The notes under the pieces were generated by a model, which saw only the letters and a list, made by a program, of their open reading frames with translations, made no database searches and had not been told where the DNA came from. From the IMG/VR virus record IMGVR_UViG_3300030385_002649, positions 62,001 through 126,000 of that record: a DNA stretch of 64,000 nt; one strand, 5' to 3'. Below, piece after piece: positions 1 to 14,681 of this stretch. How positions within the stretch are numbered: the stretch's first letter is position 1; each line of letters starts with the position of its first letter. The position numbers were made by a program, and so were the translations under genes.

Positions 1-1
1 C

Positions 2-118
2 GTGTTTTACACGGCTGACATGGTCACATCTGGCACGACGATTATAAAAACAAGATCCGGATGCCTTACTGACAAAATCTGGTATTCAGCACTTTTAGGA
101 GCCAACAATATACAATGA
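2..118 (+). CDS. 5'-truncated small ORF carrying the W-x-S motif of the microprotein family
   Basis: Frame open from the window edge: VFYTADMVTSGTTIIKTRSGCLTDKIWYSALLGANNIQ*. WYSAL resembles WYSAEIL of 10172..10381. Its TGA overlaps an ATG at 115. Confidence 0.45.
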   Translation: MFYTADMVTSGTTIIKTRSGCLTDKIWYSALLGANNIQ

Positions 119-542
119 ATATGTATGATTACAACAACGAAGGTAAAATGCACCTCTAGCCGATATCATTCGAGGCTGGCTTCAAGAGACCTGTCCTGAC
201 TTAACCGTAGTTAAAAACGTCTACGCTAAGCTCCACCTCAAATCAACAATCAACAATCAACAATCAACAATCAAAGAGCATGACTGGCTTCACCTTAACA
301 TAATTGTCAGCAGAGCAACGCTCAACCCCAAGATTATGATCACTGTGGATCGTGATGGCGATGACGAAGTCATGTATTTTCACGAGTTTGTGATTATTGG
401 AGACGGAATCAAGGACTGTAACAATCCTGATGACATCAATTTCGCTTACGACGACGCTTTTCTTGACCGATTTAAGGTTGAGATCGATAAGATCGTAAGC
501 GGAGAATGGTTCGACCAATCCGGGGTCGACGCTGTATCTTGA
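115..542 (+). pseudogene. Probable hypothetical gene with an apparent 2-nt frameshift near 153-159 (track reports only 336..542)
   Basis: ATG115 frame (MNMYDYNNEGKMHL) stops at TAG157-159. The 336..542 frame is open back to 147 (LADIIRGWLQETCPDLTVV...) with no ATG before 336. Removing one CT from cacCTCTagcc joins the two. Confidence 0.4.
241..275 (+). repeat. 7-bp tandem repeat (AATCAAC)x4 + AATCAAA
   Basis: Read directly at 241-275. Confidence 0.95.
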
Positions 543-600
543 CGCTTGGGACTTTCCGTGTTCCAATTTTCTTTCACTTCCAACCCCAAGAGGGTAATCA

Positions 601-1065
601 ATGACTACTGCTAAAATGACCAACGTTGCTGTGGGCCAAGTGTGGTATTGTAACGAGGGCTCAGGCACTCGTTACATCGAAATCACAGGTGTCGTCCCAG
701 GACAAAGCGTCCGATACACAACTTACGCTAAATGGGCCTGGCCTGACCGTAAGCGTTATCCGACCGACTCCACCATGAAAACGCAATCGTTGATCGCTAG
801 CTATAAGTTGGCAACTTCGATTCAAGTGGCAACTTTGTTGCGCCGTCAACCGGTGACCGGAACCAAGACTGCTGGCGCTCCTCCGTATGACGCTGCTCGC
901 CACGTCGCAGCCGAAATGATATCTATCAATAAAAAGCTGGGCGTTATCGGCCAAAACCAAGCTCAATTTCGGGCTGACTTCGCAAACACCATGAAGCGTC
1001 TGCATGACAAACAGAACCGACTTGAAGAGAAGCTCGACAGCCTTCTCGAATCCCTTGGAGGGTAA
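601..1065 (+). CDS. hypothetical protein (154 aa), C-terminal coiled coil
   Basis: ORF with AGAGGG RBS-like sequence upstream; followed by 1068 after 2 nt. Confidence 0.75.
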   Translation: MTTAKMTNVAVGQVWYCNEGSGTRYIEITGVVPGQSVRYTTYAKWAWPDRKRYPTDSTMKTQSLIASYKLATSIQVATLLRRQPVTGTKTAGAPPYDAARHVAAEMISINKKLGVIGQNQAQFRADFANTMKRLHDKQNRLEEKLDSLLESLGG

Positions 1066-1067
1066 TC

Positions 1068-1349
1068 ATGAGAGACACAATGCAAGACCCAATCGTACGG
1101 TACACGTGCGATTGGTGTAAAAAGGTCGACTACGTTCGGAATCTTAAGGACGTCTATAAGAAAACCAGTCCAGAGACGTGGGTTCACAACAACGGGGAGG
1201 GGCCAGGAGAGGATTTCTGCTCCTCCGGGTGTCGATCACAGTCTGAAGTCGCCTGGGAGCAAGGAATAGACGCTGCTCTTAACGCTCAGACTGACAAATG
1301 GGAGACGATCCGAATAGCTAGCGCGCTGGAGCGTCGAGCCTTCAAATGA
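1068..1349 (+). CDS. small Zn-binding hypothetical (CDWC...CSSGC)
   Basis: GGAGGG RBS; paired Cys motifs; ATGA overlap with the next gene. Confidence 0.7.
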   Translation: MRDTMQDPIVRYTCDWCKKVDYVRNLKDVYKKTSPETWVHNNGEGPGEDFCSSGCRSQSEVAWEQGIDAALNAQTDKWETIRIASALERRAFK

Positions 1350-1567
1350 GCAACATGACTACTAATACAAAGACTGATATGCTTAAACTGTTACGACCTG
1401 ATTGGACCGAAGAGGATCTTGCAGTTCATGGCCCTAATTGTAGGTGCGGACATAGCATTTACAACCATGAGGGCGGTCAATGGCCTATGGAACAATGTTG
1501 TTATCTTGATTGCGATTGTATTACCAACGCTACGTGGTTATCAAGCACGATTAAATGGGAGGCTTAA
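1346..1567 (+). CDS. CxC/W-x-S microprotein family member (73 aa)
   Basis: CRCGHSIYNH...CCYLDCDC...WLSSTI; ATGA-coupled. Confidence 0.7.
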   Translation: MSNMTTNTKTDMLKLLRPDWTEEDLAVHGPNCRCGHSIYNHEGGQWPMEQCCYLDCDCITNATWLSSTIKWEA

Positions 1568-1620
1568 TATTTATTTTGTTTATGATAAGTATTTAACAAT
1601 TAACCAAAGGAATAATTCCT

Positions 1621-2718
1621 ATGAAACTGGAATCAAGACCATACCAGGAACGGATCCACGCTAAAGCGTTGGGTTTCCTGGAGACTGACACCGGTAACGT
1701 AACCAACTCCGTAATGATCGAATCCCCCACAGGGTCCGGCAAAACCATTATGGGGTTGAAACTTGTCCAGCACCTAGCTGAGCAAGGTATGAACATTGGG
1801 TGGGTTGCGCACAGACGCGAACTTCTCAAACAAGCGATGGGCGCTAACAGGGACTTCTTTGGAATCGAAGGAGTTGAGTATATCTCGCTGTTTACTCGTC
1901 AACCACAGCAATACGCCCATTGCGACGTGATCGTGGTTGACGAGTGCCAGCACGACGCTAGCAAAACAGCAACAATGCTGCACGACGTGATCCGTCCTAA
2001 GATCATTATTGGGTTGTCAGCTACACCCTATAGAACTGACAACGCTCAGTTGTGCTTCTCTAGGGTCATTAGGGACGCTGGAATTCACCAGCTAATCCGA
2101 GAGGGCTTCCTTGCCGAATTTAAGCAATGGATTGTCGAGGACGATTGGACGCCAGAAGTGGTGGCTAATACTTATCTTCAGCAACCTGAGATTTGGGGCA
2201 AGTCGGTCATTTACTTCTTGACTAAGGACGACGCTGAAGCTTGTAACGCTATCTTGGAAGCTAACGGCGTTCGGTCCGGTTGCGTGGTTGGTGATAAGCC
2301 TCGTGACCACCTTTTGGAGGGCTTTCATGGCGACACTCTTGACGTGTTGACAAACGTTATGGTTCTTACTGAGGGTTTCGATTATCCTGCTTTGCAGACT
2401 GTATTTGTTAGGCCCTCTTCGCGGGGTCCGACTGTGCAAATGGCTGGGCGTGGGTTTCGGATTTATCCCGGTCAGGACAGCATCAATATCGTCCAGTCTA
2501 GAGCCACCAAGTATCCGTTCACTCGTCATGCCCGTCCATTGGAGCAGTGGCAGAGACTCCACGGAAAATGGCGAAACGTGAGCCCTAAGGATCTAGCACC
2601 TTTGTTCAAGTCGCAGATCGCGAGAGTCTCTGACGCCCAGGTTGCGTTACCCACTTTTCTGACCAAGCAAATGGGCAAGAAGAACATTTTTGCAAGTATC
2701 ATGGGCCCTCAGAAGTGA
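1621..2718 (+). CDS. SF2 DExH helicase (ResIII/UvsW-like)
   Basis: Walker A PTGSGKT, DECQH, SAT, TEGFD, QMAGRGFR motifs. Confidence 0.93.
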   Translation: MKLESRPYQERIHAKALGFLETDTGNVTNSVMIESPTGSGKTIMGLKLVQHLAEQGMNIGWVAHRRELLKQAMGANRDFFGIEGVEYISLFTRQPQQYAHCDVIVVDECQHDASKTATMLHDVIRPKIIIGLSATPYRTDNAQLCFSRVIRDAGIHQLIREGFLAEFKQWIVEDDWTPEVVANTYLQQPEIWGKSVIYFLTKDDAEACNAILEANGVRSGCVVGDKPRDHLLEGFHGDTLDVLTNVMVLTEGFDYPALQTVFVRPSSRGPTVQMAGRGFRIYPGQDSINIVQSRATKYPFTRHARPLEQWQRLHGKWRNVSPKDLAPLFKSQIARVSDAQVALPTFLTKQMGKKNIFASIMGPQK

Positions 2719-2725
2719 ACCCAGA

Positions 2726-2766
2726 CTCCCAGTGTCGCCATTGCGAATATGGGGGCCTTTTTTGTT
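2726..2766 (+). terminator. probable intrinsic terminator after the helicase
   Basis: Imperfect stem CTCCCAGTGTCGC-catt-GCGAATATGGGGG followed by CCTTTTTTGTT. Confidence 0.55.
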
Positions 2767-2903
2767 CCCATTGCATGAATTGTATGAGGGACAATTGCTT
2801 TTGGTATTCTTCAGTTTTAATTCAGAAGAATTACTTTTACTCAACCAAACAATTAACGAGGCCAACATATGAGCGACCAAAACAAGTCTAAAGGAAAACG
2901 ACA

Positions 2904-4061
2904 ATGAGTAACAACATGCAGGACCGGACGGTATCAACTCTCCGATCAGAAGGGCTGACCTTTGGCGAGCATTATGTCAAGCTAGGAGACGTGCTTTGTC
3001 GCAAGACTAAGGACTACAACGAAAAGGCCGGGGCAGGAAGTCGCAACAACCTCCTCAGTACCGCACTCGAATGGAGCAATAGCACTTTCTTCCCAAGCGG
3101 ACGATTCTGGCTCTCATTCTGTGCTAAAGTTGGAATTAGCCCGAGTGTTTTCAACCTTTTCACCCATGAGGAAGTGTTCAACCGTTGCCGAGATCGAAAC
3201 AAGGTCAGCGAGAGCGGCAATATCCGAATCGTAGAGGAAAAGAAGAGCAAAGACCTCCTAGCTATCAGCGATCCCAGCAAGGGCATTATTCATTGGGAGA
3301 ACGCCTATAAGATCGTGGAAGAGAAAAAGGGAACTGGAGTTTATTACAACGAAGGTGTTGTCTCTTCTCTTCACAGGCTCCAGAACGATACCCCGGTCCG
3401 AGTTGGGATTGAGGATTATGAGCCTCGGATTCAGGTCATGATTCCGATTGACGGTTATGGTTCCCCTACTGTCTATCTGGCTCTGGTCAGAAAGGCCAAC
3501 AACGCTGTGATCGTTGCTATGGGCAAGGCTTTCAAGTCTACGGTCAAGGTGTCTAAGAAGAAGAAAGCTGATCCGATTGAATTCTCTTTGGAGCGCATGT
3601 TCGATTCGTTCAGTAATGACGAGGGTTTCGACGCTCTAATCCGACGAATGGACGCTGCTCGCCACGCTCCTTTGTCAGTTCGGGAGTTTCATGAGATTCA
3701 GAAGATCTTGTCCAATCTCCCTAGGGATATTCGGGCTCAGAATGAGATTGATCGAATGATCCGTCCTGAGGTTCGGTTCTTCAACCGTCTAGCTGGCGAT
3801 CTTCACTTGAAGTATGGGCTTGCTCACCTTCAGGAAATGACTGAGAAGCAAATGGGCTTGCTGGAGACTGATATCTCTGTGTATGAGGCTTTCAACTTTA
3901 TCTCAGAATTGACCACTCACCACCTTGATTATCAGAACAATTCTGAGGCTAACGTTGCTGGAAAACTTCAGTCTTGGATTGGTCGTGTTTTGGCTCGTGC
4001 TTATGACCTTGAGGGCACGATCTCCCAGCCTAAGAAGAGCTACCTAGACCGTTACCTGTAA
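2904..4061 (+). CDS. DUF932/DUF945-like hypothetical protein (385 aa)
   Basis: LAISDPSK and PIDGYGSPTVYLALVR segments resemble, from memory, a DUF932-type family seen in planctomycetes; not searched. Confidence 0.5.
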   Translation: MSNNMQDRTVSTLRSEGLTFGEHYVKLGDVLCRKTKDYNEKAGAGSRNNLLSTALEWSNSTFFPSGRFWLSFCAKVGISPSVFNLFTHEEVFNRCRDRNKVSESGNIRIVEEKKSKDLLAISDPSKGIIHWENAYKIVEEKKGTGVYYNEGVVSSLHRLQNDTPVRVGIEDYEPRIQVMIPIDGYGSPTVYLALVRKANNAVIVAMGKAFKSTVKVSKKKKADPIEFSLERMFDSFSNDEGFDALIRRMDAARHAPLSVREFHEIQKILSNLPRDIRAQNEIDRMIRPEVRFFNRLAGDLHLKYGLAHLQEMTEKQMGLLETDISVYEAFNFISELTTHHLDYQNNSEANVAGKLQSWIGRVLARAYDLEGTISQPKKSYLDRYL

Positions 4062-4240
4062 TGGTTGATCTAAGCGAAGTTCCCTGGATTTGTAGGTGTA
4101 CCCATGAATGGGAGGATCACACCTACGACACTTCGCCTGGCTTTTGGGCTCCTCGGGGCTGTGAAGTTGAACACTGCATCTGTGACAACTGGCAACCCTG
4201 GCTTTCATGGCAAGTTTATTACGATTGGATTTCGAGATGA
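4061..4240 (+). CDS. CxC/W-x-S microprotein (59 aa), not in ORF track
   Basis: MVDLSEVPWICRCTHEWEDHTYDTSPGFWAPRGCEVEHCICDNWQPWLSWQVYYDWISR*; TAATG overlap upstream, ATGA overlap downstream. Confidence 0.75.
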   Translation: MVDLSEVPWICRCTHEWEDHTYDTSPGFWAPRGCEVEHCICDNWQPWLSWQVYYDWISR

Positions 4241-4548
4241 CTGACAACTTTGGGTTTGGGTTTAAATTCAACGATTGGTTTCGTTATTACTCGCCCTCTA
4301 AATTTAACAAATTCTCTAGAGAGCATGATTTAGATATGTACGGAGAAGATATTAACGCACTCCAAGCACTTTTCAAAAAGTACGGATACGATTCTCTCCG
4401 TGGACAACTCGATGAGTTCATGGATCAAGAACCCAAGTCCTTGAAGTTTCCAACGCCGATGAAGAATGTCGAAGTTCCTTACACCGATCCGGACTGTGCT
4501 GGGTGTGGAGTTGGACCCGACGAGGACTGCATCGAATCACGACATTAA
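4237..4548 (+). CDS. hypothetical protein with C-terminal CAGC...C motif
   Basis: Track ORF 4207..4548; ATG4237 overlaps the stop of 4061..4240 (ATGA) and is the likelier start. Confidence 0.65.
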   Translation: MTDNFGFGFKFNDWFRYYSPSKFNKFSREHDLDMYGEDINALQALFKKYGYDSLRGQLDEFMDQEPKSLKFPTPMKNVEVPYTDPDCAGCGVGPDEDCIESRH

Positions 4549-5639
4549 GCTTCCGGAGTCGCAACGTAAGTTATGACAACCTCCTGAACGTTGCCAGTTT
4601 CACGAGCTTTAGCTAGGGCGGCAGTAACAGCTGTCCTGGCCGCGTCAACCCCACTGTAAGAGTTGACCTGAACAACATCATTGTCTTTCACAACGAAAGT
4701 CAACTCTTCAGTGACGTTAACAGTATCAACAATTTCAAGACCGTAAGTCGCTCTTGGATACTTGATTGGATTATGAATCGTAACTGAGTTAGAGCCCGCA
4801 AATAAAAGGCCGACAGCGTTACGATTCATGTCCATCAACAGACTGCCAGAGTCTCCACCCTGGCTCATAACGCCAGTTATGATTTGGTCTTGGAATTTTA
4901 GAGTTCCAATGCCATAATCAACCCAAACTGTGGCGTTAAGACCAATGATATTGCCTGTTGTGTGACCTGTGGTTCGCCCTGTTTTTTGAACTGCCATGCT
5001 CATTGTTGGGTTGTCATTAAAGGCAACGATTGAACCGATGTCTTTAATGGCTTCTTCGACAAGGTTTTCGTTATCAATAACGGCAATGGCGGAGTCTTCC
5101 ACGTTATAACCGTAGATTCTGTGCCAGTTGGCTGCGTCCCATGTCCTTTGTCTAGCATTAATAAGAGGGCGGAAGTACTTGAGGAGACCGATTCTATCTC
5201 TTGTGCCTCCTCCGTCGTACCTGCCTGGTTGAATAGCCATGTGTCCTCTTGAACCACGATTTTCCGCTGCGAGGACGTGATTGTTGGATAGGATGACTAG
5301 GTCGCCTTCACGGTCTCGAAACACTCCGCCGATGGTTCCCGCTGTTACCCAGAGGTGCCCGCATGAGATTCCTGGGGCAGCTGGTCGTTCTTTACTGGTG
5401 TAGGGGTGGGCTGAGATTTTACCGACTCGGCCAACTACGTCGGTTTTAACCCCTTCAATTTCATCTTCAATGATGTCTGAAGGTTTTAACTGGCTCTTTG
5501 GGACTTTTTCACTAACGAGGACAATTAGGGCGTCCTCGTCGGTGGGTTTTCCGTCTACCCATTTCTTGCCTGTAGCAACTGCTACGACGTTCTTTTTCTT
5601 GTGTAGACGATCACCATGGGCTTCAACTAGGTTTTTCAT
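4545..5639 (-). CDS. trypsin-like (S1) serine protease, Nal1-like architecture
   Basis: AGTIG, LSNNHVL (His), EDSAIA (Asp), KTGRTTG, GGDSGS (Ser); N-terminal VVAVATGKK...LVSEKVP...EIEGVKTDV prodomain-like segment. Confidence 0.88.
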   Translation of the reverse strand: MKNLVEAHGDRLHKKKNVVAVATGKKWVDGKPTDEDALIVLVSEKVPKSQLKPSDIIEDEIEGVKTDVVGRVGKISAHPYTSKERPAAPGISCGHLWVTAGTIGGVFRDREGDLVILSNNHVLAAENRGSRGHMAIQPGRYDGGGTRDRIGLLKYFRPLINARQRTWDAANWHRIYGYNVEDSAIAVIDNENLVEEAIKDIGSIVAFNDNPTMSMAVQKTGRTTGHTTGNIIGLNATVWVDYGIGTLKFQDQIITGVMSQGGDSGSLLMDMNRNAVGLLFAGSNSVTIHNPIKYPRATYGLEIVDTVNVTEELTFVVKDNDVVQVNSYSGVDAARTAVTAALAKARETGNVQEVVITYVATPEA

Positions 5640-5643
5640 AACC

Positions 5644-5650
5644 TATTTTT
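5644..5650 (-). promoter_or_regulatory. AAAAATA putative late promoter
   Basis: 4 nt upstream of the protease ATG5639. Confidence 0.45.
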
Positions 5651-5653
5651 CAA

Positions 5654-6061
5654 CTAATCGGGTGATTCGACTGCGCCACCTTTAACAGTTCCATACCTAT
5701 TATTGGACGTGCGTTTCTTCTCTTTGTTCAATTTCTTAGGAGAATAACTCTCAAGCCCAAACAGCCGTCTGGCATCGTTTAGCTGAATAACTGGCAGTTC
5801 GTTGTCGGTCACTAAGTCTCTTAGAATGTTAGAGACGGTTTGTTCAAGGTATGTCGGGCCTAGTGACTTCTGCTCGGGGCTGGGGTGAGCTAGACACTCA
5901 CCGTTTTTAATGGCTGCTTGAACATGGTGCAGGGTATATCCTGCTCCATTCAGCAATTTTTTAAGGCGGCTGTCACCTTTATTCAATCTTCGGCTGACTT
6001 TTCTGAACACATATTGTGGGAATGGTTCGCCTGATTGTTCATGTAAGGTGTAGAGCTTCAT
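5654..6061 (-). CDS. hypothetical basic protein, MKLYTLHE leader
   Basis: 135-aa ORF co-oriented with the protease; TAAATA 6 nt upstream of the ATG. Confidence 0.65.
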   Translation of the reverse strand: MKLYTLHEQSGEPFPQYVFRKVSRRLNKGDSRLKKLLNGAGYTLHHVQAAIKNGECLAHPSPEQKSLGPTYLEQTVSNILRDLVTDNELPVIQLNDARRLFGLESYSPKKLNKEKKRTSNNRYGTVKGGAVESPD

Positions 6062-6172
6062 TCATTATATTTATCTTTAGTATTCTAATCGCATGGAGGG
6101 AATGAGGGAATTGATTTTATGTATTTAACTCTTGCGATTAAAGCAACTTCATAAAAAGCAAAGAGAACTAAA

Positions 6173-7462
6173 ATGAGCACAGTAACAGAACAACACATGC
6201 TAATCTTCACAGATATCGACAATAACAATAACAAGTTTTGGGAGGGCGTCTTAAAGGATGACAACACTCTTACTTGTCGATGGGGACGGGTTGGAGAACG
6301 AGGACAAAGCCGCGATTTCTCCGGAGGAGCCAAGAAATTGGCAGCCAAGTTGCGTGAGAAAAAGCGCAAGGGCTATGAAGAGGCCATGATCCTTAAAGAG
6401 ACCGGCCCTGCAGTTAGTGTTGGGAAGAGCCGACTTAAAAAGGTCGCGGCCAAGCAGATTGATCACGGATCGTGCGCGGAAACATCAACTCTCATTGAAT
6501 TCCTGGTTAAAGTCAACCGACACCAAATTTCTGCTGCCTCTGGTGGTAAGATTTTCATCGATGACGACGACGGGCTGATCAGAACTCCTCTTGGGGTTGT
6601 CAACCAGGAAGCTATCGATGCTGCTCGGATCTTCCTCACGGACATTGGCGATTGCGTCCAAGTTAAGTCCTACACTACTAAAAAATGGAAGGAAGCGGTC
6701 AACAAGTTCACTAGGCTTATCCCCCAGGACGTCGGTCGTGGTAGGGGGTGGGATAAGAAACTCTTCCCTAACATCTCGGCTGTTCGAAAGCAGAATGATT
6801 TGTTGGATTCGCTGCAGACCACTCTCACTCACGTCTTGGATAACCCTGCCAAGACTAAAGCTGATGCGAAGGAGGAAGATGTCTTCAAGGTTAAGCTTGT
6901 CCCGTTGACTGATGATAAAGTTCTTTCTCACATTAGGAGCTTCTATTATAAGAGTGTGAAGAAGATGCACTCTAGTTATGGGATGAAAATCAGCCGAGCA
7001 TGGGTCGTGGACATCGAGACGATGCGTAAAAAGTACGAAACTGATGGGGCGGGGCTGAGCAACGTCTGGGAGCTTTGGCACGGTACAAAGGCTTCGAACG
7101 TCCTCTCCATCTTAAAGGGTGGCCTGGTTATTCCCCCATCAACAGCAGGTCACGTATGTGGTCGGATGTTCGGCGATGGTCTTTACTTCTCTGACCAGAG
7201 CACGAAGTCTTTGAACTATGCTACTGGTTATTGGGACGGGTCGTCGGAGGAACGTTGTTTCATGTTCATGTCGGACGTGGCGATGGGCGAGACTTACGTT
7301 CCTAAGTCGACCTATTGGGGTCAATCTAACACTAAGAGTTGTCCTAAGGGCTATGATAGCACGTTCGCTAAGGCTAACGTTTCTGGCGTTCAGAATAACG
7401 AAATGATCGTTTATAGGACTTCTCAGGCTAACTTGAGATTTCTCGTTGAATTCGTCCGTTAA
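6173..7462 (+). CDS. poly(ADP-ribose) polymerase-like protein (WGR + regulatory + catalytic)
   Basis: WGR domain (CRWGRVGERGQ...EKKRKGY), helical regulatory region, catalytic LWHGT, MFGDGLYFSDQSTKSLNY, NNEMIVY. Confidence 0.93.
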   Translation: MSTVTEQHMLIFTDIDNNNNKFWEGVLKDDNTLTCRWGRVGERGQSRDFSGGAKKLAAKLREKKRKGYEEAMILKETGPAVSVGKSRLKKVAAKQIDHGSCAETSTLIEFLVKVNRHQISAASGGKIFIDDDDGLIRTPLGVVNQEAIDAARIFLTDIGDCVQVKSYTTKKWKEAVNKFTRLIPQDVGRGRGWDKKLFPNISAVRKQNDLLDSLQTTLTHVLDNPAKTKADAKEEDVFKVKLVPLTDDKVLSHIRSFYYKSVKKMHSSYGMKISRAWVVDIETMRKKYETDGAGLSNVWELWHGTKASNVLSILKGGLVIPPSTAGHVCGRMFGDGLYFSDQSTKSLNYATGYWDGSSEERCFMFMSDVAMGETYVPKSTYWGQSNTKSCPKGYDSTFAKANVSGVQNNEMIVYRTSQANLRFLVEFVR

Positions 7463-7601
7463 GTGGAGATGCAAATGGTGTGGATACCCCTGGGAACACA
7501 TTAACTCAGACGTTACTTGGAAATGCTCGCCAGAAAATTGTTACAATTACAGAATTTGGTTCTCTTATAATGTGCAAATAGACAGGCCATTCCCGGTATG
7601 A
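7446..7601 (+). CDS. Cys/His microprotein, array 1 member A (51 aa, TTG start), not in ORF track
   Basis: MNSSVKWRCKWCGYPWEHINSDVTWKCSPENCYNYRIWFSYNVQIDRPFPV*; overlaps the PARP stop by 17 nt; ATGA overlap with the next ORF. Confidence 0.6.
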   Translation: MNSSVKWRCKWCGYPWEHINSDVTWKCSPENCYNYRIWFSYNVQIDRPFPV

Positions 7602-7753
7602 GCGCGTTTAATGATGCTTTTCAGGATTGTAAGTGTGGCACGGTTTGGCATCATTTCCACGTCGGGTTTCACTGCTGGCATAGTTACCAAATTCGAGCCT
7701 GGAGAATAGAACTTTATGAAGAAGACGCAGGAATTGTGATCGATGGCTTGTAA
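7598..7753 (+). CDS. Cys/His microprotein, array 1 member B (51 aa), not in ORF track
   Basis: MSAFNDAFQDCKCGTVWHHFHVGFHCWHSYQIRAWRIELYEEDAGIVIDGL*. Confidence 0.75.
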   Translation: MSAFNDAFQDCKCGTVWHHFHVGFHCWHSYQIRAWRIELYEEDAGIVIDGL

Positions 7754-7754
7754 T

Positions 7755-7889
7755 GTGATTGATAATTTTCCTTGTCGGTGCGGACCGGATCCTGATCATT
7801 TCCAAGAAAATTGCTGGTACAGCTACCAAATCAAGTTCTGGGAAGCACCGATCAAGGTTTACCCTTTAATTAGTGGGGAAAAGATCTGA
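7755..7889 (+). CDS. Cys/His microprotein, array 1 member C (44 aa, GTG start), not in ORF track
   Basis: MIDNFPCRCGPDPDHFQENCWYSYQIKFWEAPIKVYPLISGEKI*; TGATG overlap with 7889. Confidence 0.75.
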   Translation: MIDNFPCRCGPDPDHFQENCWYSYQIKFWEAPIKVYPLISGEKI

Positions 7890-8188
7890 TGGAGATAGGT
7901 ATTGACCTTTTCCCGTGTTCTAATCTTATTTCGGGGGACAAAGACATGCTGAAAGATGAAGTTCTCACGTTGTGCAGATGTAAGGAGGAAAGCATCACCC
8001 ATTGGGAAGAAAATTGCTGGTATAGTTATCAACTTCCCAGGTGGTCTAAGGGTGTTGTCCGGCACGATCATTTGAGGTGTGACTTCCCGGCGTGGGCTCG
8101 GCTGTTGGTTGAGGCTCGTGGTAGAGTTGAGGATCCTGCGATTGCGATGGACAAATTGTTGATGGAATTTGAAACTCATGGTTTGTAG
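7889..8188 (+). CDS. Cys/His microprotein, array 1 member D (99 aa)
   Basis: LCRCKEESITHWEENCWYSYQLPRW core plus a C-terminal helical extension. Confidence 0.75.
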   Translation: MEIGIDLFPCSNLISGDKDMLKDEVLTLCRCKEESITHWEENCWYSYQLPRWSKGVVRHDHLRCDFPAWARLLVEARGRVEDPAIAMDKLLMEFETHGL

Positions 8189-8324
8189 ATGCCATTATGA
8201 AGTGTCGATGGTCCATTGGGGGAAAACTTGTTGGATTTCTTATCGAATCCCTAGATATAGGAAGACCGTTAGATTGGATTATCCAACAATTCATCGGCTT
8301 AACAAAGTGAAGGACTTATTATGA
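8178..8324 (+). CDS. Cys/His microprotein, array 1 member E (48 aa), not in ORF track
   Basis: MVCRCHYEVSMVHWGKTCWISYRIPRYRKTVRLDYPTIHRLNKVKDLL*; 11-nt overlap with D. Confidence 0.72.
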   Translation: MVCRCHYEVSMVHWGKTCWISYRIPRYRKTVRLDYPTIHRLNKVKDLL

Positions 8325-8372
8325 AATTTTGCGTATTTTACTCTTTAAGAGTTCCAAAAACGAGGAGGAAAC

Positions 8373-8975
8373 ATGGCGGTTACTGCTAACAAGGAACAAT
8401 TTGTGCTCATCTACACGAGCAACAAGAATCACGACAACCTGGTTTACCAAGTCGACAACGTGCATCGTGGGGTGTACCACTTGCGCTGTGTCGAGACTAG
8501 TCGGGTTATCAAGGCTCATAAGAGCCGTATTAGGAAAGTTCTATCCGAGGAGGAAATGATGAACGGAACTGGCGTTATTGAAGATACCGAGGTTGTCAAC
8601 GAGTCGACGACCACGGACAACATCGAAGTGAAGGCTCTAGAGGAAACTGACGAGACAATCGAGGCGATCAAGCCAAAGGCTAAGGTCAAGAAGACTAAAG
8701 CCCAAGCTATCCCCTTCGACTTCGATCAGTTCAAGACCGATGGTTACGAGATTTGGGTTAAGTCCGATCTTGAGTTCGACATCGAGAATGTTAAGGTTGA
8801 CGCGATCTGCCTCATCTACCCGGATGAGGCCAGTTACGAGACTTTCAACATCTACAACGGTTCTCTCGGAAAGAAGGGGTCTCGCGGTCAGAACTATAAG
8901 TTCACCGAGAAGAACACCATCGAGAGGAAGCGTAAGCAGCTGGGCAAGAAGGGCTACACCCAACGTAGCAACTAA
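8373..8975 (+). CDS. hypothetical protein, possible degenerate C-terminal WGR-like domain
   Basis: Strong AGGAGG RBS. C-terminus GKKGSRGQNYKF...KRKQLGKKGY parallels the PARP WGR GRVGERGQSRDF...KLREKKRKGY. Confidence 0.7.
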   Translation: MAVTANKEQFVLIYTSNKNHDNLVYQVDNVHRGVYHLRCVETSRVIKAHKSRIRKVLSEEEMMNGTGVIEDTEVVNESTTTDNIEVKALEETDETIEAIKPKAKVKKTKAQAIPFDFDQFKTDGYEIWVKSDLEFDIENVKVDAICLIYPDEASYETFNIYNGSLGKKGSRGQNYKFTEKNTIERKRKQLGKKGYTQRSN

Positions 8976-8992
8976 TGACACCAGCCAAGTGT

Positions 8993-9027
8993 GGGCGCCC
9001 GGGAGGAACAAACCCTCCCGGGCGCCC
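8993..9027. repeat. perfect 14-bp GC-rich inverted repeat (hairpin), 7-nt loop, no U-tract
   Basis: GGGCGCCCGGGAGG-aacaaac-CCTCCCGGGCGCCC. Confidence 0.85.
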
Positions 9028-9031
9028 TCGT

Positions 9032-9133
9032 ATGCTTAGAAACCATAAAGGAAGGTCCTGGCACAGTTTCTGGGTCACCTTAAAAAGGAACATGGATGCG
9101 ATGTACGGCATCGTACGGGTTACGAACTTGTGA
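9032..9133 (+). CDS. possible degenerate W-x-S microprotein (33 aa)
   Basis: MLRNHKGRSWHSFWVTLKRNMDAMYGIVRVTNL*; WHSFWV resembles WYSFWI at 13748. Confidence 0.3.
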   Translation: MLRNHKGRSWHSFWVTLKRNMDAMYGIVRVTNL

Positions 9134-9212
9134 GAATCTCTGGACCAGTTATCGAATTTATTATCTAAAAAATAATTCTTTTGTAATTAGTGCCAGGTCT
9201 CGGCGATTATAA
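9096..9212 (+). CDS. possible degenerate W-x-S microprotein (38 aa)
   Basis: MRCTASYGLRTCENLWTSYRIYYLKNNSFVISARSRRL*; ENLWTSYRI resembles ENCWYSYQI; AAGGA upstream. Confidence 0.4.
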   Translation: MRCTASYGLRTCENLWTSYRIYYLKNNSFVISARSRRL

Positions 9213-9357
9213 ATTCGCAAGCTGTACCAGGACCATCTGTTTGTTCCTATCCCTCGTGATCCCATGGTAGTGATTCTCTAGGAAATTCGAAAACATCTTC
9301 AGAGTTCAAGAGTTCTCTGAAAACAGCGGATTTGGAAGAAATGAGGAGTAGACGCCA

Positions 9358-9588
9358 ATGACAATCATTTTTCTTTGTGCCGTCCTGTTGATTACAGGAT
9401 TTATTACGCACCGACTGTATCTTAAAAATATCAGTCGGTGGCGTATGAGTAAAGTTGAACAAGATAGCGCAGTGATCGGGTATCATTGGGCTCAAGTAGA
9501 ACTGGATTACCTATATGCTGATTGCACTACCGATGAGTTTAATCGTTGGAATCCTCATCTCACTACGATTGAAAGAAAGAGCCACTAG
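9358..9588 (+). CDS. small membrane protein (N-terminal TM)
   Basis: GAGGAG RBS; hydrophobic IIFLCAVLLITGFI. Confidence 0.6.
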   Translation: MTIIFLCAVLLITGFITHRLYLKNISRWRMSKVEQDSAVIGYHWAQVELDYLYADCTTDEFNRWNPHLTTIERKSH

Positions 9589-9675
9589 CGGCATTTTCGA
9601 GCGCATGATGCGCGATCCCAAATTACTAACCACCATTAAACAGCTTGACAAAGCGACAAAGCGATGGAGCGATAA

Positions 9676-10002
9676 ATGACTGAAACCATTGAACAAACCG
9701 GCACTGTAACCACCACAGACACGGACACCGAAACCCAAGGTAAGAGCGGCTACTATCCAAAGTGGGTCGTCATTTTCCACAATGACGATGGCACTGCCTA
9801 TGATTTCGTCGTCGGGGTTCTCGTCAAGTTCTTCAACAAAGCAATGAAAGACGCCCAGCAATTAGCCGAGGAAGTCCACAAGAACGGTCAAGGCGTTGCT
9901 GGGATTTTCCCTAAGGAACAAGCTGAATTCCGCTCCCATGAGACGATGAAACTCGCCCGAGAACACGGTTATCCCCTGCAACTCTCGGTTGAGCCTGAGT
10001 GA
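9676..10002 (+). CDS. clpS: ATP-dependent Clp protease adaptor ClpS
   Basis: WVVIFHNDD..YDFVVGVL..FF...EVHKNGQG...YPLQLSVEPE; N-degron pocket NDD/H retained. Confidence 0.92.
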   Translation: MTETIEQTGTVTTTDTDTETQGKSGYYPKWVVIFHNDDGTAYDFVVGVLVKFFNKAMKDAQQLAEEVHKNGQGVAGIFPKEQAEFRSHETMKLAREHGYPLQLSVEPE

Positions 10003-10004
10003 GA

Positions 10005-10172
10005 ATGAAGTTCTTATCGCCAGAATGGTGGAAAAACGATCCTTCCTCAACTTGTCGTTGTGGATCACCGCTGAGCATCAACTCAATTGCTACGTGTCCT
10101 TGTGGGTCTATAGCGTGGTTCTCGGCGGAAATACTTAGTGAGGTCAGGTTTTACAACCGATTGGTCCATTAA
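10005..10172 (+). CDS. CRCG/W-x-SA microprotein, array 2 member A (55 aa), not in ORF track
   Basis: MKFLSPEWWKNDPSSTCRCGSPLSINSIATCPCGSIAWFSAEILSEVRFYNRLVH*; 2 nt after the clpS stop; TAATG overlap with the next ORF. Confidence 0.78.
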   Translation: MKFLSPEWWKNDPSSTCRCGSPLSINSIATCPCGSIAWFSAEILSEVRFYNRLVH

Positions 10173-10381
10173 TGTCGTTGTTCGAAAAAGTGACGCATCA
10201 TGACATTGAAGAATGGTTCACTAACTGGAAAGACCCTGCTGAAATGTGCCGGTGTGGGTATAGTCTATATGATCATACTATGCAGAGTCATTTTCATGCT
10301 TGGTATTCCGCAGAAATACTTAGTGATGAACAGTTCAATGAAAATATGAGTGAAAATATGAACGCGAAATCGAACAAATGA
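10172..10381 (+). CDS. CRCG/W-x-SA microprotein, array 2 member B (69 aa)
   Basis: WKDPAEMCRCGYSLYDH...HAWYSAEILSDEQF. Confidence 0.78.
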   Translation: MSLFEKVTHHDIEEWFTNWKDPAEMCRCGYSLYDHTMQSHFHAWYSAEILSDEQFNENMSENMNAKSNK

Positions 10382-10590
10382 GCGACGCATGGAAACGGAC
10401 ATGGAAAGACCCAGCCAAAATTTGTAGATGCGGCAGCCTTGTGATGGTACCATGGCACAGACACAAACCGTGGATTTCTGCTATCATTTTAAGCGACATT
10501 CAATTCTACAAGATTTATGACATGAAAACGGTTAGGCTCAGAATAAATGAAACTCATCCCATCGATTATAAAAGACCTTCTAAAAGATAG
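10378..10590 (+). CDS. CRCG/W-x-SA microprotein, array 2 member C (70 aa)
   Basis: WKDPAKICRCGSLVMVPWHRHKPWISAIILSDIQFY; ATGA overlap. Confidence 0.78.
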   Translation: MSDAWKRTWKDPAKICRCGSLVMVPWHRHKPWISAIILSDIQFYKIYDMKTVRLRINETHPIDYKRPSKR

Positions 10591-10885
10591 CTGCGAGCTA
10601 GAGGTAGAGGTTCTAGACTGTGGGTGGGTTTCAGACTTGCTAACGCATCTATACGTTCCAGCGGCAGAAATGGACATTGAGATTAGCCTGAATGAAGGAC
10701 TTATCAATGTCCAAGCATGGGGCGACGACAGTGTTTATAATTGTAGAGTATTTGACCCTCACGACATAGAGTTCATAGACGATCTAAGAGAATACTTGAT
10801 TCCTATGTGCGAAAACCATGAAGTACACATGAGGTACCCAGATGAAAAAAGCGGAAATAATCCAGAAGCTAGTAAAACACCTTAA
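10547..10885 (+). CDS. hypothetical protein (112 aa)
   Basis: Fills the gap before ligA; weak resemblance to the 147..542 frame (IIKDLLKDSCELEV vs IIRGWLQETCPDLTV). Confidence 0.65.
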   Translation: MKLIPSIIKDLLKDSCELEVEVLDCGWVSDLLTHLYVPAAEMDIEISLNEGLINVQAWGDDSVYNCRVFDPHDIEFIDDLREYLIPMCENHEVHMRYPDEKSGNNPEASKTP

Positions 10886-12779
10886 CCGTTGCGACCTAGC
10901 CTATTACAACCAAACCCCACTCATCAGCGACCAAGACTACGACAAACTCCGAGACAAGCTAACCAGCCTAGACCCAAGCAACCCCTTCCTCGCAAAAGTT
11001 GGGGCTCCCGTCGTCACCACGGACGGACGAAGCAAGCACACACATAAATCGCTCATCGGGTCCCTTGCCAAGTGCAAGACCAAAGAAGAGTTCATGAAAT
11101 GGGCCGAGGGAAAGGGCCCCCTGTGCGTCAGCTACAAGTATGATGGCAGTACAGTAGTCGCCACCTACGAAAGCGGTACGCTGAAAACTCTAGCGACCCG
11201 TGGCGATGGCACCATCGGAGAAGATATCACGGACAATGCCGACCTGATAGGCTCAAAATCCAACACTTACCATTTCATCCCGAAGCAACTTACCTCCGAT
11301 TTTACCGGAGAAATCCGAGGCGAAGCTATCCTGCGTTTAGGTCGGTTTGAAGAGTTCTTCAAGCCCGCTGGTTACAAAAACGCCCGCAACGCCGCCAACG
11401 GAAAAGTCCGCGATATGAAGCGCGACGACCTGATCAAATGGTTGGAAGTGGTGTGGTTCGATATCATCCCCGAGGACCGTGATGTCAAGACTGAGGGAGA
11501 GAAATGGGCTCTCATCCAGGAACTTGTCAACGATGATCGCCCCACCACTAAGAGTCTCGCTATGGCTCAGATCCAGACTGACGCCGAGAAGGCATGGGAG
11601 ATCTTCGAGGAGGTCGGCAAGCTTAGGTCCGGCTTGGACTTTGAGATTGACGGTATAGTCGTCAAGGTAAACGATATTGATGACCAAGAGTCCTTCGGTG
11701 TCACTAGTAACCGGCCCAATGGGGCTATCGCTATCAAGTTCCCCTCTTTGGGAGCAGAAACCTTTTTGGAGAGTATCGAATGGAATCGTGGATTGACAGG
11801 GGTTTACGCCCCGACCGGGATCCTCAAGTCGGTAGATATCGGCGGAGTGACCATAGGAAGAGTCTCCCTGTGCGGCATGGACGAGATCCGCAGGTTGAAG
11901 ATCGCCCCAGGAGACAAGGTCTACATCACCCGGCGAAATGACGTCATCCCCAAGGTTGAATATGTCATCAATCGGACCCCACAGCCGGGGACCATCCGAA
12001 CTCCAGTTAAAGCACCTAAGACGTGTAATGAGTGTGACGCCGACCTGATCCAGAACGGATCCTACCTGATCTGCCGAAACCCGGACTGCCAGGGAGAGAT
12101 TTTCGGTAGTCTCATGACCTGGATTCAGCGTTTGAAGATTAAAGGGCTAGGGTCTTCAGTGCTCCGGTCCCTCATCGACGAGGGCGTCACGGACATCTGC
12201 AAGCTCTACGAAGCTCAAGAGGAAGTCTATGAAAAAGCAACAAGATCCTCAAAGCTTGCAGCTAAGCTCTACGCATCCGTGCAATCAACAACGGAAGTTA
12301 GACTTGGTACTTTCTTATCAGGGCTCTGTATACCGTCTCTCGGGGCTACAAACGGTACGCGGTTGGAAAAGCGATTTAATACGCTTGAAGCAGTTGTCGC
12401 AGCATCCGAAGAAGACCTGGAAGGAGTACCGGGCATCAAAACAAATGCTAAGAAAATCAGAGCAGGACTTGACGCTAAATCCGATCTAATCGAAGGATTA
12501 GCTAAGATCCTAACGATCAAGACTCTAGACACTAGTGGGCCTCTAGCTGGACACACTGTCTGTGTCACCGGGGATTTAACCGTCCCAAGGTCTAAGTTCC
12601 AAGATTGGATTAGGTCTCTAGGAGGGGAAGTTAAGTCGGGCGTCTCTAAGGACCTATCGTATCTTATAACTAACGCTCCTGCAAGCGGCACTTCTAAGAA
12701 CAAGAAAGCGGACAAGTATGGTGTCAGAAAGTGTACTGAAACGGATTTCTATAGTCTTATCGGGTCCTCGCCAGCCTAA
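10842..12779 (+). CDS. ligA: NAD-dependent DNA ligase
   Basis: KYDG adenylation motif, TRGDG, EIRGE, DGIVVK, AIKF, C4 Zn finger, HhH repeats, C-terminal BRCT (VCVTG...GGEVKSGVSKDLSYLI). Confidence 0.96.
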   Translation: MKKAEIIQKLVKHLNRCDLAYYNQTPLISDQDYDKLRDKLTSLDPSNPFLAKVGAPVVTTDGRSKHTHKSLIGSLAKCKTKEEFMKWAEGKGPLCVSYKYDGSTVVATYESGTLKTLATRGDGTIGEDITDNADLIGSKSNTYHFIPKQLTSDFTGEIRGEAILRLGRFEEFFKPAGYKNARNAANGKVRDMKRDDLIKWLEVVWFDIIPEDRDVKTEGEKWALIQELVNDDRPTTKSLAMAQIQTDAEKAWEIFEEVGKLRSGLDFEIDGIVVKVNDIDDQESFGVTSNRPNGAIAIKFPSLGAETFLESIEWNRGLTGVYAPTGILKSVDIGGVTIGRVSLCGMDEIRRLKIAPGDKVYITRRNDVIPKVEYVINRTPQPGTIRTPVKAPKTCNECDADLIQNGSYLICRNPDCQGEIFGSLMTWIQRLKIKGLGSSVLRSLIDEGVTDICKLYEAQEEVYEKATRSSKLAAKLYASVQSTTEVRLGTFLSGLCIPSLGATNGTRLEKRFNTLEAVVAASEEDLEGVPGIKTNAKKIRAGLDAKSDLIEGLAKILTIKTLDTSGPLAGHTVCVTGDLTVPRSKFQDWIRSLGGEVKSGVSKDLSYLITNAPASGTSKNKKADKYGVRKCTETDFYSLIGSSPA

Positions 12780-12824
12780 AGAGATCCGGAAGACTCGAAC
12801 CACGCACAAAATAAAGGAACACAT

Positions 12825-13748
12825 ATGGCCCTCGGATTATGCTGCCAATGGTTAGAAATCAAAAAAGGCAAACCAAAGAATGTGCTCATAAGCAGAAGTC
12901 TTCAATTGGGCCGTTTTAACAGAGGTGAATATAGTCGAGAAAAGATCAAGAAGACATTTATAGACAACCTTCAAAATGTCTTAGACGTTATGCCTAAGAT
13001 TGTAGCATCTGGGGTTCGTTCTCTACGCATTAGCAGTTCAATGTTTCCTCTTTTTGATAAAGTTGACAAAGAATTGGCTGAAAATAAAGAAACCGATTTG
13101 TTACTTGCTGAAATAGGTTCAATGGCATTAATCAATGGCGTTAGAATCACCACTCATCCCGCTCAGTTTACAGTTATTTCAAGCGATAACCCAAAAGTGG
13201 TTGATAATTCTATCCGAGAATTGGAGTATCACGCTTGGATGTTCGATAAAATGGGGCTTCCACAAACCCCTCATTATAGCATCAACATCCATGGAGGTAA
13301 AAGGGACCGAAAAACGCAATTGATATCAGGAATTGAACGTCTTAATGACTCAACTCGTCTCCGCTTAACCTTAGAGAATTGTGAATTTGCGTACAGTGTT
13401 AAAGATTTAGCGTTAGTTGCGAAGGACGTAAAAGTTCCCATTTGTTTTGATAGTCACCATCATCGATTTAACTCTTCGGACCTGTCTGGTGAAAAAGCCA
13501 TGGGTATAGCGATAAAAAGCTGGCCATCCGGCAGCAAACCCATGACCCATTTAAGCAATTCCAAACCAGAATATGTAGAAACTGATTCCGTCACTAAATT
13601 ACGAAAGCATAGTGATTATTTACATCAAGTTCCAGAATATCAATTAAAAGCTAACAACGATGGGTTGATTGATATAGAAATTGAAGCTAAAATGAAAAAC
13701 CTCGCCATCTTTAAAGCTGTAAATGATTTTGGTTTACAGCTTAATTAA
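12825..13748 (+). CDS. uvsE: UV-damage endonuclease (UvsE/UvdE)
   Basis: LGLCC, RISSSMFP, RITTHPAQF, NIHGG, LTLENCE, CFDSHHH, HSDY, IEIEAKMK. Confidence 0.93.
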   Translation: MALGLCCQWLEIKKGKPKNVLISRSLQLGRFNRGEYSREKIKKTFIDNLQNVLDVMPKIVASGVRSLRISSSMFPLFDKVDKELAENKETDLLLAEIGSMALINGVRITTHPAQFTVISSDNPKVVDNSIRELEYHAWMFDKMGLPQTPHYSINIHGGKRDRKTQLISGIERLNDSTRLRLTLENCEFAYSVKDLALVAKDVKVPICFDSHHHRFNSSDLSGEKAMGIAIKSWPSGSKPMTHLSNSKPEYVETDSVTKLRKHSDYLHQVPEYQLKANNDGLIDIEIEAKMKNLAIFKAVNDFGLQLN

Positions 13749-13906
13749 TGCAAAACTCTACAGTCTCATCGGGTCCTCGCCAGCCTGATAGGCGTAAAAG
13801 AGGCGAATCACCACCGCCGGGTTCAAGATGGTATTCATTTTGGATCCGCCGCAAAAGGAAAAGACTTCGAGATGGACCTATTCGACGATTGTTACTGGGG
13901 GAATAA
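13748..13906 (+). CDS. possible basic W-x-S microprotein (52 aa), not in ORF track
   Basis: MQNSTVSSGPRQPDRRKRGESPPPGSRWYSFWIRRKRKRLRDGPIRRLLLGE*; TAATG overlap with uvsE; lacks Cys. Confidence 0.45.
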   Translation: MQNSTVSSGPRQPDRRKRGESPPPGSRWYSFWIRRKRKRLRDGPIRRLLLGE

Positions 13907-14063
13907 ACAAAAACGCAAGGAATACTACAAGAAATATGTTGAAGGCTGGAAGACCAGACCGTGCTCGGCCTGTGCCGGATCTGGCCATTACGACAGGGGC
14001 GGAAGCCCAAAATGCCAAGGCTGTGAACCGCCAGGGTCTGGAAAAGAAAGATATAAGCCATGA
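13872..14063 (+). CDS. small DnaJ-type Zn-finger protein
   Basis: CSACAGSG...CQGC..PGSG; ATGA overlap with 14060. Confidence 0.65.
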   Translation: MDLFDDCYWGNKQKRKEYYKKYVEGWKTRPCSACAGSGHYDRGGSPKCQGCEPPGSGKERYKP

Positions 14064-14662
14064 AGCTTAAAGCTGCCTTGAAAAGCGAACAAAACCTCAA
14101 GTGCGCAATTTGCAAAGACAATGACGATGGTCTTATGCTATGCGCTAAGTGCAACACTGTTCAGCACGCTTCATGCATGATCGAATTTAAAGGCTGTTCT
14201 GGCTGTGGAAATAGCGACCCTCATGCCGAGAAGCCTGCCAAAAAGAAAACAGAAACCAAAACGAGCAGTGCTCACACTTTGTCTAGACAGGATTCAGGTG
14301 TGCTCTGCGACCCCTCATTCGGTTATTGTCATTATCCAATGGGAACGCAACATTTTTGTCCATACCACAGAATTACGACGACCGATGATTATCAAGTTCC
14401 TAAAAGGAATGATGGGCCGCACGGATCACACAGACCGTGTCGGTCTTGTGGTCCCCACACTTATTCTCCTGGCGACATGCAGTCTAAAAGAACACACGGT
14501 TGCTGCTGTTGCTCCTGTTGGCGTTATAGGTCCTCAGAAGAACGAGACCGAGTCATGCCAGAGATGGAGATATCTGGCATGTTTGTTAATGCCGCTAAGC
14601 TATTCGTTTTTTCACTAATAGTTTTCTCTCTTGCGGACCTCCTTGTGGCGTTAAGTATCTAA
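14060..14662 (+). CDS. prokaryotic RING-like finger protein with C-terminal TM helix
   Basis: CAIC...LMLCAKCNTVQHASCMIEFKGCSGC fits the Prok-RING_1 pattern; extra Cys/His clusters; hydrophobic C-terminus. Confidence 0.6.
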   Translation: MKLKAALKSEQNLKCAICKDNDDGLMLCAKCNTVQHASCMIEFKGCSGCGNSDPHAEKPAKKKTETKTSSAHTLSRQDSGVLCDPSFGYCHYPMGTQHFCPYHRITTTDDYQVPKRNDGPHGSHRPCRSCGPHTYSPGDMQSKRTHGCCCCSCWRYRSSEERDRVMPEMEISGMFVNAAKLFVFSLIVFSLADLLVALSI

Positions 14663-14681
14663 ACTGAAGCGAGAGAGAATA

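Follow-up and report, generated by a model that had tools for sequence, protein, structure and literature searches.

A family of about sixty microprotein genes with a putative zinc module in an uncultured marine jumbo phage

The DNA described here is a stretch of 64,000 nucleotides (the window), bases 62,001–126,000 of a single 370,804-bp sequence that constitutes virus record IMGVR_UViG_3300030385_002649, and its subject is a family of cysteine- and histidine-rich microproteins. Ten clear members are encoded in the window, all on the plus strand, with invariant C, C, W and S columns in their alignment. Two architectures occur. The long type reads C-R-C-G-H-x4-H, a loop whose length varies widely, C-x2-4-C-x-C, five further residues and W-x-S-x-x-I; the short type reads C-R-C…H…C-W-x-S-Y. 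The dispersed genes at 1346 and 4061 are of the long type, array 1 (7446–8324) is of the short type, and array 2 (9999–10590) is a local subfamily with a W-x-S-A-E-I-L-S tail. Scores below are bits in a hidden Markov model (HMM) of the whole family and, because the window copies were part of that model, in a leave-out HMM rebuilt from the 48 copies outside the window.

1346–1567, plus strand: long type, 73 aa, acidic (isoelectric point, pI, 4.8), CRCGH-x4-H…C-x4-CDC-x5-WLS; 46.3 bits, 37.0 leave-out; ATGA overlap between its start and the stop of the preceding gene; its nearest paralogue lies at genome position 213,654.
4061–4240, plus strand: long type, 59 aa, acidic (pI 4.4), CRCTH-x4-H…C-x4-CIC-x5-WLS; 48.5 bits, 34.9 leave-out; TAATG overlap with an upstream 385-aa gene.
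7446–7601, plus strand: divergent, 51 aa, TTG start, first gene of array 1 and weakest of the ten, overlapping the 3′ end of a PARP gene; CxxC replaces CxC, with a WFSY tail; 23.3 bits, 14.6 leave-out.
7598–7753, plus strand: short type, 51 aa, CKCG…H…CWHSYQI, ATGA overlap; 32.5 bits, 26.6 and 32.2 in two leave-out HMMs.
7743–7889, plus strand: short type, 48 aa, CRCG…DH…NCWYSYQI; 34.7 bits in a short-type leave-out HMM.
7889–8188, plus strand: short type with a C-terminal extension, 99 aa, CRCK…H…NCWYSYQL, TGATG overlap, alternative start at 7946; 30.2 bits in the short-type leave-out HMM.
8169–8324, plus strand: short type, 51 aa (TTG) or 48 aa (ATG at 8178), CRCH…H…TCWISYRI; 28.9 bits, 23.0 in the short-type leave-out HMM.
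9999–10172, plus strand: array 2, 57 aa, CRCG…CPCG…WFSAEILS; 33.7 bits, 10.6 leave-out; BLASTP against the 10172 protein 3e-10; its GTG start overlaps the ClpS stop codon (GTGA).
10172–10381, plus strand: array 2, 69 aa, WKDPAEMCRCG…H…H…WYSAEILS, TAATG overlap; 34.6 bits, 25.8 leave-out.
10378–10590, plus strand: array 2, 70 aa, WKDPAKICRCG…HRH…WISAIILS, ATGA overlap; 24.1 bits, 14.2 leave-out; 51% identical to the 10172 protein (BLASTP 4e-12).

The family was delimited over the whole genome, with ten dinucleotide shuffles of the genome as the control for chance. The pattern C[RK]C..W.S. had 59 matches in the six-frame translation, against 0–4 per shuffle. The family HMM, built from these matches, retrieved 62 genome ORFs (open reading frames) at the membership cut (expectation value, E, <0.01), against 0–1 per shuffle, and the ceiling of the shuffled genomes was 15.1 bits; a second, independent search tool returned 37 long-type matches. 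With scores of 23–48 bits, the ten window genes all exceed that ceiling, so the ten that a first-pass annotation of the window had called clear members form a real family, and the possibility it had raised that such an HMM would match shuffled sequence equally well was not borne out. Together, these results show a family of about 60 diverged paralogues, about six times the first-pass count, ten of them in the window. The copies are distributed as follows:

Genome 49.8–59.1 kb, plus strand: 4 copies.
Window, plus strand: 10 copies.
Genome 213.7, 234.9 and 247.4 kb, mixed strands: 3 single copies.
Genome 332.3–345.0 kb, minus strand: the large block, about 45 copies in 12.7 kb, outside the window.

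The leave-out HMM recovered seven of the ten window members at 16–37 bits (1346 at 37, 4061 at 35, 7598 at 27, 10172 at 26, 7743 at 21, 7889 at 19 and 8169 at 16), and a short-type leave-out model placed the array-1 genes at 23–35 bits. Three members were borderline in the leave-out HMM, namely 7446 (14.6 bits), 10378 (14.2) and 9999 (10.6). The last two are tied to their robust neighbour 10172 by BLASTP (4e-12 and 3e-10, respectively), and 7446 is retained for its position in the array and its all-member HMM score of 23.3 bits.

The proteins are very small, as had been claimed of most of the window members: 54 of the 62 family ORFs are 75 aa or shorter, the median is 55.5 aa and several fall below 50 aa. 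By a rough estimate that assumes 500–600 genes, about one in ten genes of the phage belongs to the family. Such tiny ORFs are easily missed by gene callers, and the available calls for this genome disagree on identical DNA, the calls of the ENA assembly (L008) containing only about half the small genes listed by Logan and JGI (L009, L010); the family is therefore under-represented in protein databases.

Several features bear on whether these ORFs are genes. Across 56 copies, the invariant serine is encoded by AGY in 31 and by TCN in 25, and the invariant arginine by AGR in 35 and by CGN in 17. Neither pair of codon families is linked by single synonymous changes, which argues that selection acts on the protein. 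DNA likeness between copies is confined to stretches of about 30 nt (33 nt at most) with 75–83% identity, and a 33-nt repeat common to 7797–7829 and the 7889 gene carries three synonymous differences across the residues ENCWYSYQ. Start and stop codons overlap (ATGA, TAATG, TGATG or GTGA) at 1346, 4061, 7598, 7889, 9999, 10172 and 10378; on inspection of the junctions, the ATGA and TAATG couplings first noted at 1346 and 4061 proved correct. Overlaps of this kind are typical of translationally coupled phage operons. Taken together with the tandem relatives on contigs from other metagenomes, described below, these features indicate that the family ORFs are real and probably translationally coupled genes.

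Profiles of the long and short types align with each other (93.6% probability, E 2e-7), and the short form appears to be the long form without its middle C…CxC loop. The span from CRC to WxS ranges from about 13 to 52 residues, as expected from the earlier remark that the middle loop is variable, and the family HMM and alignment likewise support the description of a multigene family of Cys/His-rich microproteins with conserved ligand positions. Family-wide, the median pI is 8.9, 65% of members have a pI above 8 and the tails carry a net positive charge (mean +1.9); in the window, the pI is 4.4–5.5 for six of the ten copies. The copies are thus split by charge, those in the window being mostly acidic (pI 4.4–5.5) and those in the large block mostly basic (pI 8.5–11.4), and this split may reflect two functional classes. 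An AlphaFold2 model of the 4061 protein, computed from the family alignment, has a mean pLDDT (predicted local distance difference test) of 87.9 and consists of small β-hairpins followed by a C-terminal helix that begins right after W-x-S.

Next, we compared the family with described proteins. A HMMER search of 1.84 billion representative proteins gave 70 matches at E<1e-3, which fall into five groups:

Group 1: the phage's own proteins.
Group 2: about nine W-x-S-tailed microproteins on short metagenome contigs.
Group 3: many proteins in which only the core (CxCGH-x4-5-H…C…CxC-x2-F/Y) is present, repeated 2–6 times in tandem; the two that were checked both lie in phage contigs.
Group 4: GC-rich microproteins, placed by a genome scan in 47 Actinomycetota loci.
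Group 5: P0026, a true member of FAM221.

Against the FAM221 family of Pfam (PF14753), P0026 reaches 67.7 bits, and the phage profile matches this protein at E 6.8e-5 in the 1.84-billion-protein search. When the family and P0026 were aligned directly with hhalign, the probability was 82.9% (E 9.3e-6) and the seven Cys/His columns all matched up, and 6 of 38 aligned members have sub-threshold matches to PF14753 (best E 0.0064). The predicted fold points the same way, the comparison being one of predicted models on both sides: the top Foldseek cluster in the AlphaFold database (AFDB) for the 4061 model is ‘Protein FAM221A’ (probability 0.99, root mean square deviation 1.5 Å over 38 residues), and a shape search of the ESM Atlas returned small viral hypothetical proteins and the FAM221A cluster (template modelling score, TM, 0.61). 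From these sequence profiles and models we conclude that the core is probably a distant homologue of the repeated Cys/His module of FAM221.

Otherwise, the module was found in no named family. Scans of the window members and external homologues against Pfam, PHROG and NCBIfam gave nothing at threshold; no solved structure was found by PDB sequence search, Foldseek against the PDB or VIA-align wide; AFDB Swiss-Prot gave no match and BFVD only weak ones, to phage hypothetical proteins. A word-index search of 5.8 billion proteins returned the phage's own proteins only, and the literature on the Cys/His motif and on FAM221 function yielded nothing relevant. The first-pass statement that this is not a named family thus holds as far as these thresholds go and needs amending for the core, given its distant homology to the Cys/His module of PF14753.

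Tandem W-x-S-tailed members occur on three tiny contigs from two other metagenome assemblies, with four copies in 643 bp on one (L012), four in 535 bp, of both long and short types, on another (L011) and two on the third (L013). Further afield, only the core module is held in common. In cultured phages, tblastn gave marginal core-module matches only, in Bacillus and Mycobacterium phages, and a pattern scan of IMG/VR found single core modules only, without the W-x-S tail. Other phage proteins (P0008–P0017) carry the core as repeat proteins of 2–6 modules, and Actinomycetota carry it as microproteins of 40–70 aa at 47 genome loci; most of these relatives lack the W-x-S tail, and they are repeats within one protein or single-copy genes, whereas the phage family consists of 60 separate paralogues. 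Elsewhere in phages, the core is fused to a Polβ nucleotidyltransferase (P0032) or found with DUF3310 (P0023), beside a Toprim gene, or in the same region as ERF/YqaJ. The actinomycete microprotein (CRCGHxREAHEHYRRGTDCxxCxCxRF, loci L028–L074) appears unannotated; its recurrent neighbours are GT2 glycosyltransferase-like genes (clusters of 17 and 14 loci) and, in 6 loci, GH16 hydrolase-like genes, one representative of each neighbour cluster having been confirmed by Pfam. Together, one small undescribed domain, CxCGH-x4-H…C…CxC, is common to four groups, namely the microproteins of the phage, phage proteins with several repeats, conserved microproteins of actinomycetes and FAM221 of eukaryotes, all of them so far without an assigned function or a solved structure. 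Particular to the lineage of this phage are the W-x-S helix and the encoding of the module by about 60 separate genes.

The carrier of the family is an uncultured marine jumbo phage of 371 kb. This assignment follows from the contig, which was assembled from a Tara Oceans marine metagenome and whose virus record carries the class complete, direct terminal repeats; from the virion and tail-fibre proteins that the contig encodes; and from the lack of a near relative. Megablast found no near relatives in phage collections, no INPHARED entry exceeds 31% identity to the ligase, and one virion protein is 31% identical to its best match in IMG/VR. Inward transcription of both microprotein clusters from the termini was considered and dropped, since the sequence does not have identical ends. 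Within window positions 1–15,000, no Rfam families or tRNAs were found, and terminator-like sites were not clearly above shuffle level.

In the window, array 1 follows a gene for a protein with WGR, PARP_reg and PARP catalytic domains (6173–7462, plus strand), and array 2 follows a ClpS adaptor gene (9676–10002, plus strand). Inside or adjoining the large block are genes for a Macro-domain protein (L001 5572–6483, minus strand) and a Hist_deacetyl-family protein (L008 13670–14287). PARP, ClpS, Macro and Hist_deacetyl proteins could form an ADP-ribosylation writer/eraser set. Iyer et al. (2021) treat the PARP, ClpS, Macro and deacetylase classes as host-hijacking tools of jumbo phages (PMC7824862).

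We regard it as reasonably probable, on the profiles and models above, that the family represents one lineage-specific expansion of about 60 zinc-module microproteins, and we propose that it serves as a repertoire of binders. The compact module C-R-C-G-H-x4-H…C-x2-4-C-x-C would act as a rigid zinc-knuckle scaffold presenting a hypervariable loop and variable charged tails, and the set as a whole would provide small binders for different host or competitor macromolecules. The acidic copies that dominate the window would more likely bind proteins, and the basic copies that dominate the large block more likely nucleic acids. A diversified set of small binding modules is our best guess for two reasons, namely that loops, tails and charge are hypervariable around a conserved, presumably rigid metal scaffold, and that the genes adjoin likely host-manipulation genes (PARP, ClpS, Macro and deacetylase-like). 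A bolder and distinctly speculative version is that the phage keeps a standing combinatorial repertoire of about 60 zinc-knuckle binders against many host and competitor targets, built on an ancient FAM221-like module.

Several points weigh against this proposal. The module very probably binds zinc, but this is read from its seven conserved Cys/His columns only, and AlphaFold does not model metals. The model of the short-type 7743 protein is poor (pLDDT 55). No member reaches the gathering threshold of PF14753 (25 bits) and none of the ten window proteins matches it, so by Pfam's criterion the phage proteins are not PF14753 members. Homology to FAM221 gives no mechanism, because FAM221 has no known function. 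Finally, promoter-like sites in window 1–15,000 are at shuffle level (21 against 18.4 expected), which leaves the first-pass description of an ‘early region’ unsupported.

The alternative that survives best is that the proteins are dedicated nucleic-acid binders, either specific transcription factors of the small zinc-finger kind or structural DNA- or RNA-binding proteins for a very large genome. The high pI of most members and the net positive tails fit this, as does the fusion or proximity of the core to nucleic-acid enzymes in other phages (Polβ, DUF3310, Toprim, ERF/YqaJ), and phage G, discussed below, offers a precedent for such an expansion. However, acidic copies make up most of the ten in the window, neither Foldseek against the PDB nor VIA-align wide matched a DNA-binding fold, and the sequence diversity and broken copies resemble conflict genes more than a regulatory set; the parallel with phage G, whose genome has no match to the family profile, is one of analogy only. 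We therefore rank the binder repertoire first and dedicated nucleic-acid binding, which we think unlikely though worth keeping in view, second; basic copies within the repertoire could themselves bind nucleic acid.

Much less probable is that these are secreted or membrane-targeted disulfide-rich peptides, bacteriocin- or toxin-like, instead of intracellular zinc proteins. The proteins are indeed Cys-rich and tiny, and a few copies have hydrophobic N termini (for example genome 335,687–335,947, MKIRLFFLMLAAMLSGLMCRCGH), but most start a few residues before CRC without a signal peptide, a CxC…CxC pattern with conserved His is what metal sites typically show, and the same module occurs inside cytoplasmic multi-domain proteins.

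Equally improbable, and already largely refuted, is a recent genomic accordion, that is, copy-number amplification under acute selection, as in poxvirus K3L, that is now collapsing; the first-pass annotation had used this term for the family. The tandem arrangement is what an accordion would leave, the window arrays are local duplicates in which the best match of each gene is its neighbour, short DNA repeats link neighbouring copies, and two pseudogenes are present. Over the whole family, the best match lies within two genes for 21% of copies, against 6.7% in a permutation (P = 0.002). However, it lies farther away for the other 79%, and the dispersed 1346 and 4061 genes have their nearest copies 150 and 268 kb away. 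Near-identical copies are absent, the closest protein pairs being only about 40–51% identical, the shared DNA is limited to the short, imperfect stretches described above, and the arrays with both architectures from other samples indicate that the family predates this genome. The claim that the repertoire is also decaying stands in part: two adjacent copies in the large block, outside the window, are broken (genome 341,600–341,965; L001 10600–10965, minus strand), the first because an in-frame TAG separates …CPCDA from GVWYS…, the second because a frameshift splits its CRCGH…H half from its CCECG…WWFS half. The four weak window ORFs that had been taken for decayed members are indistinguishable from chance. 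One further ORF keeps only the C-terminal half of the module. On this evidence we read the family as an old birth-and-death family and not as a recent accordion; it would have diversified by tandem duplication, dispersal, changes in loop length and tail, and occasional pseudogenisation.

That the ORFs are not genes at all, being chance or by-product readings of a repeated DNA element, is hardly credible: they are very short and few have a clear Shine–Dalgarno motif, but this reading is already refuted by the 62 matches against 0–1 in shuffles, the non-interconvertible codon families at conserved positions, the near absence of DNA similarity among copies, the homologues in unrelated genomes and the confident fold prediction for the 4061 product.

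The four window ORFs that had been listed as weaker members do not hold up, each scoring 10 bits or less or not matching at all, within the range of the shuffles. We ruled out 2–118 (plus strand; 6.5 bits, E 3.7), which lacks CxC and is absent from the leave-out matches; the letters belong to an open frame of 69 codons, begun before the window and ending in it, with a WYSA tail only. The ORF at 8975–9133 (plus strand, WHSFWV) had no match in the all-member search and 6.8 bits, the noise level, in the leave-out search. At 9096–9212 (plus strand, MRC…C…WTSYRI), scores of 10.0 bits (E 0.29) and 6.3 bits leave-out are at chance level, and the ORF, which is not demonstrably a member, may be a decayed short-type relic. 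The ORF at 13748–13906 (plus strand, WYSFWI) was rejected at 6.9 bits, 9.7 leave-out.

Two of these places hold further features. Just before and across the window start, genome 61,701–61,925 (L002 14701–14925) and window 2–118 are consecutive ORFs ending in MWFSYMI and KIWYSALLG, without the CxC knuckle; their HMM scores of 7.7 and 6.5 bits are at noise level, and they are either chance or tail-only relics. A 30-bp direct repeat (two copies, 93% identical; window 12748–12777 and 13757–13786) brackets the gene for UvdE (UV-damage endonuclease; 12825–13748), and the 13748 ORF begins within its second copy, read in a frame other than that of the ligase C terminus. The first copy of the repeat is the last 30 nt of the NAD-ligase gene, and its 19-nt core occurs at only these two sites in the genome. 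The arrangement resembles the trace of a cassette that inserted here, with duplication of the ligase 3′ end. Downstream, a 63-aa ORF with a DnaJ-type CxxCxGxG pair (CSACAGSGH…CQGCEPPGSG; 13872–14063, plus strand) is followed by an ATGA-coupled gene for a 200-aa Cys-rich protein with a hydrophobic C terminus (14060–14662, plus strand); both proteins are unrelated to the microprotein family.

Three known systems bear comparison. FAM221 proteins (PF14753; eukaryotic FAM221A/B) have the same pattern as the phage family, C-x-C-x-H-x4-H…C-x(n)-C-x-C-x2-[FY]. FAM221 proteins, however, are 200–400 aa long with several modules, whereas the phage proteins are single modules of 40–100 aa that add a W-x-S-x-x-I C-terminal helix absent from FAM221, and the phage short type lacks the second half of the FAM221 module.

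Large eukaryotic DNA viruses also have multigene families, and the poxvirus ‘accordion’ consists of recent amplifications. Like these, the phage family combines tandem and dispersed arrays of paralogues, birth and death, and a large viral genome; unlike the poxvirus accordion, its copies are ancient and diverged and its proteins are far smaller. If the standing repertoire proposed above is real, it would be to phages what multigene families are to giant eukaryotic viruses, and its targets would provide a first functional handle on the FAM221 module.

To our knowledge, phages rarely expand a single family to dozens of paralogues. The closest parallel is Bacillus phage G, whose Zn-ribbon expansion of about 35 copies was called ‘unprecedented’ and was suggested to comprise transcription factors or DNA-binding proteins (PMC7824862, section 3.4.3). 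Like phage G, the phage described here devotes dozens of genes to one small putative zinc-binding domain. The modules differ, and so do the phages, this one being marine, uncultured and of an unrelated lineage; a search of the phage G genome (NC_023719) with the family profile gave nothing at E ≤ 1. With about 60 copies of a different, unannotated putative zinc module, the present family exceeds the roughly 35 of phage G, the one precedent found. A small putative zinc domain expanded within one jumbo-phage lineage is of a kind already known, and what is new is the unannotated module.

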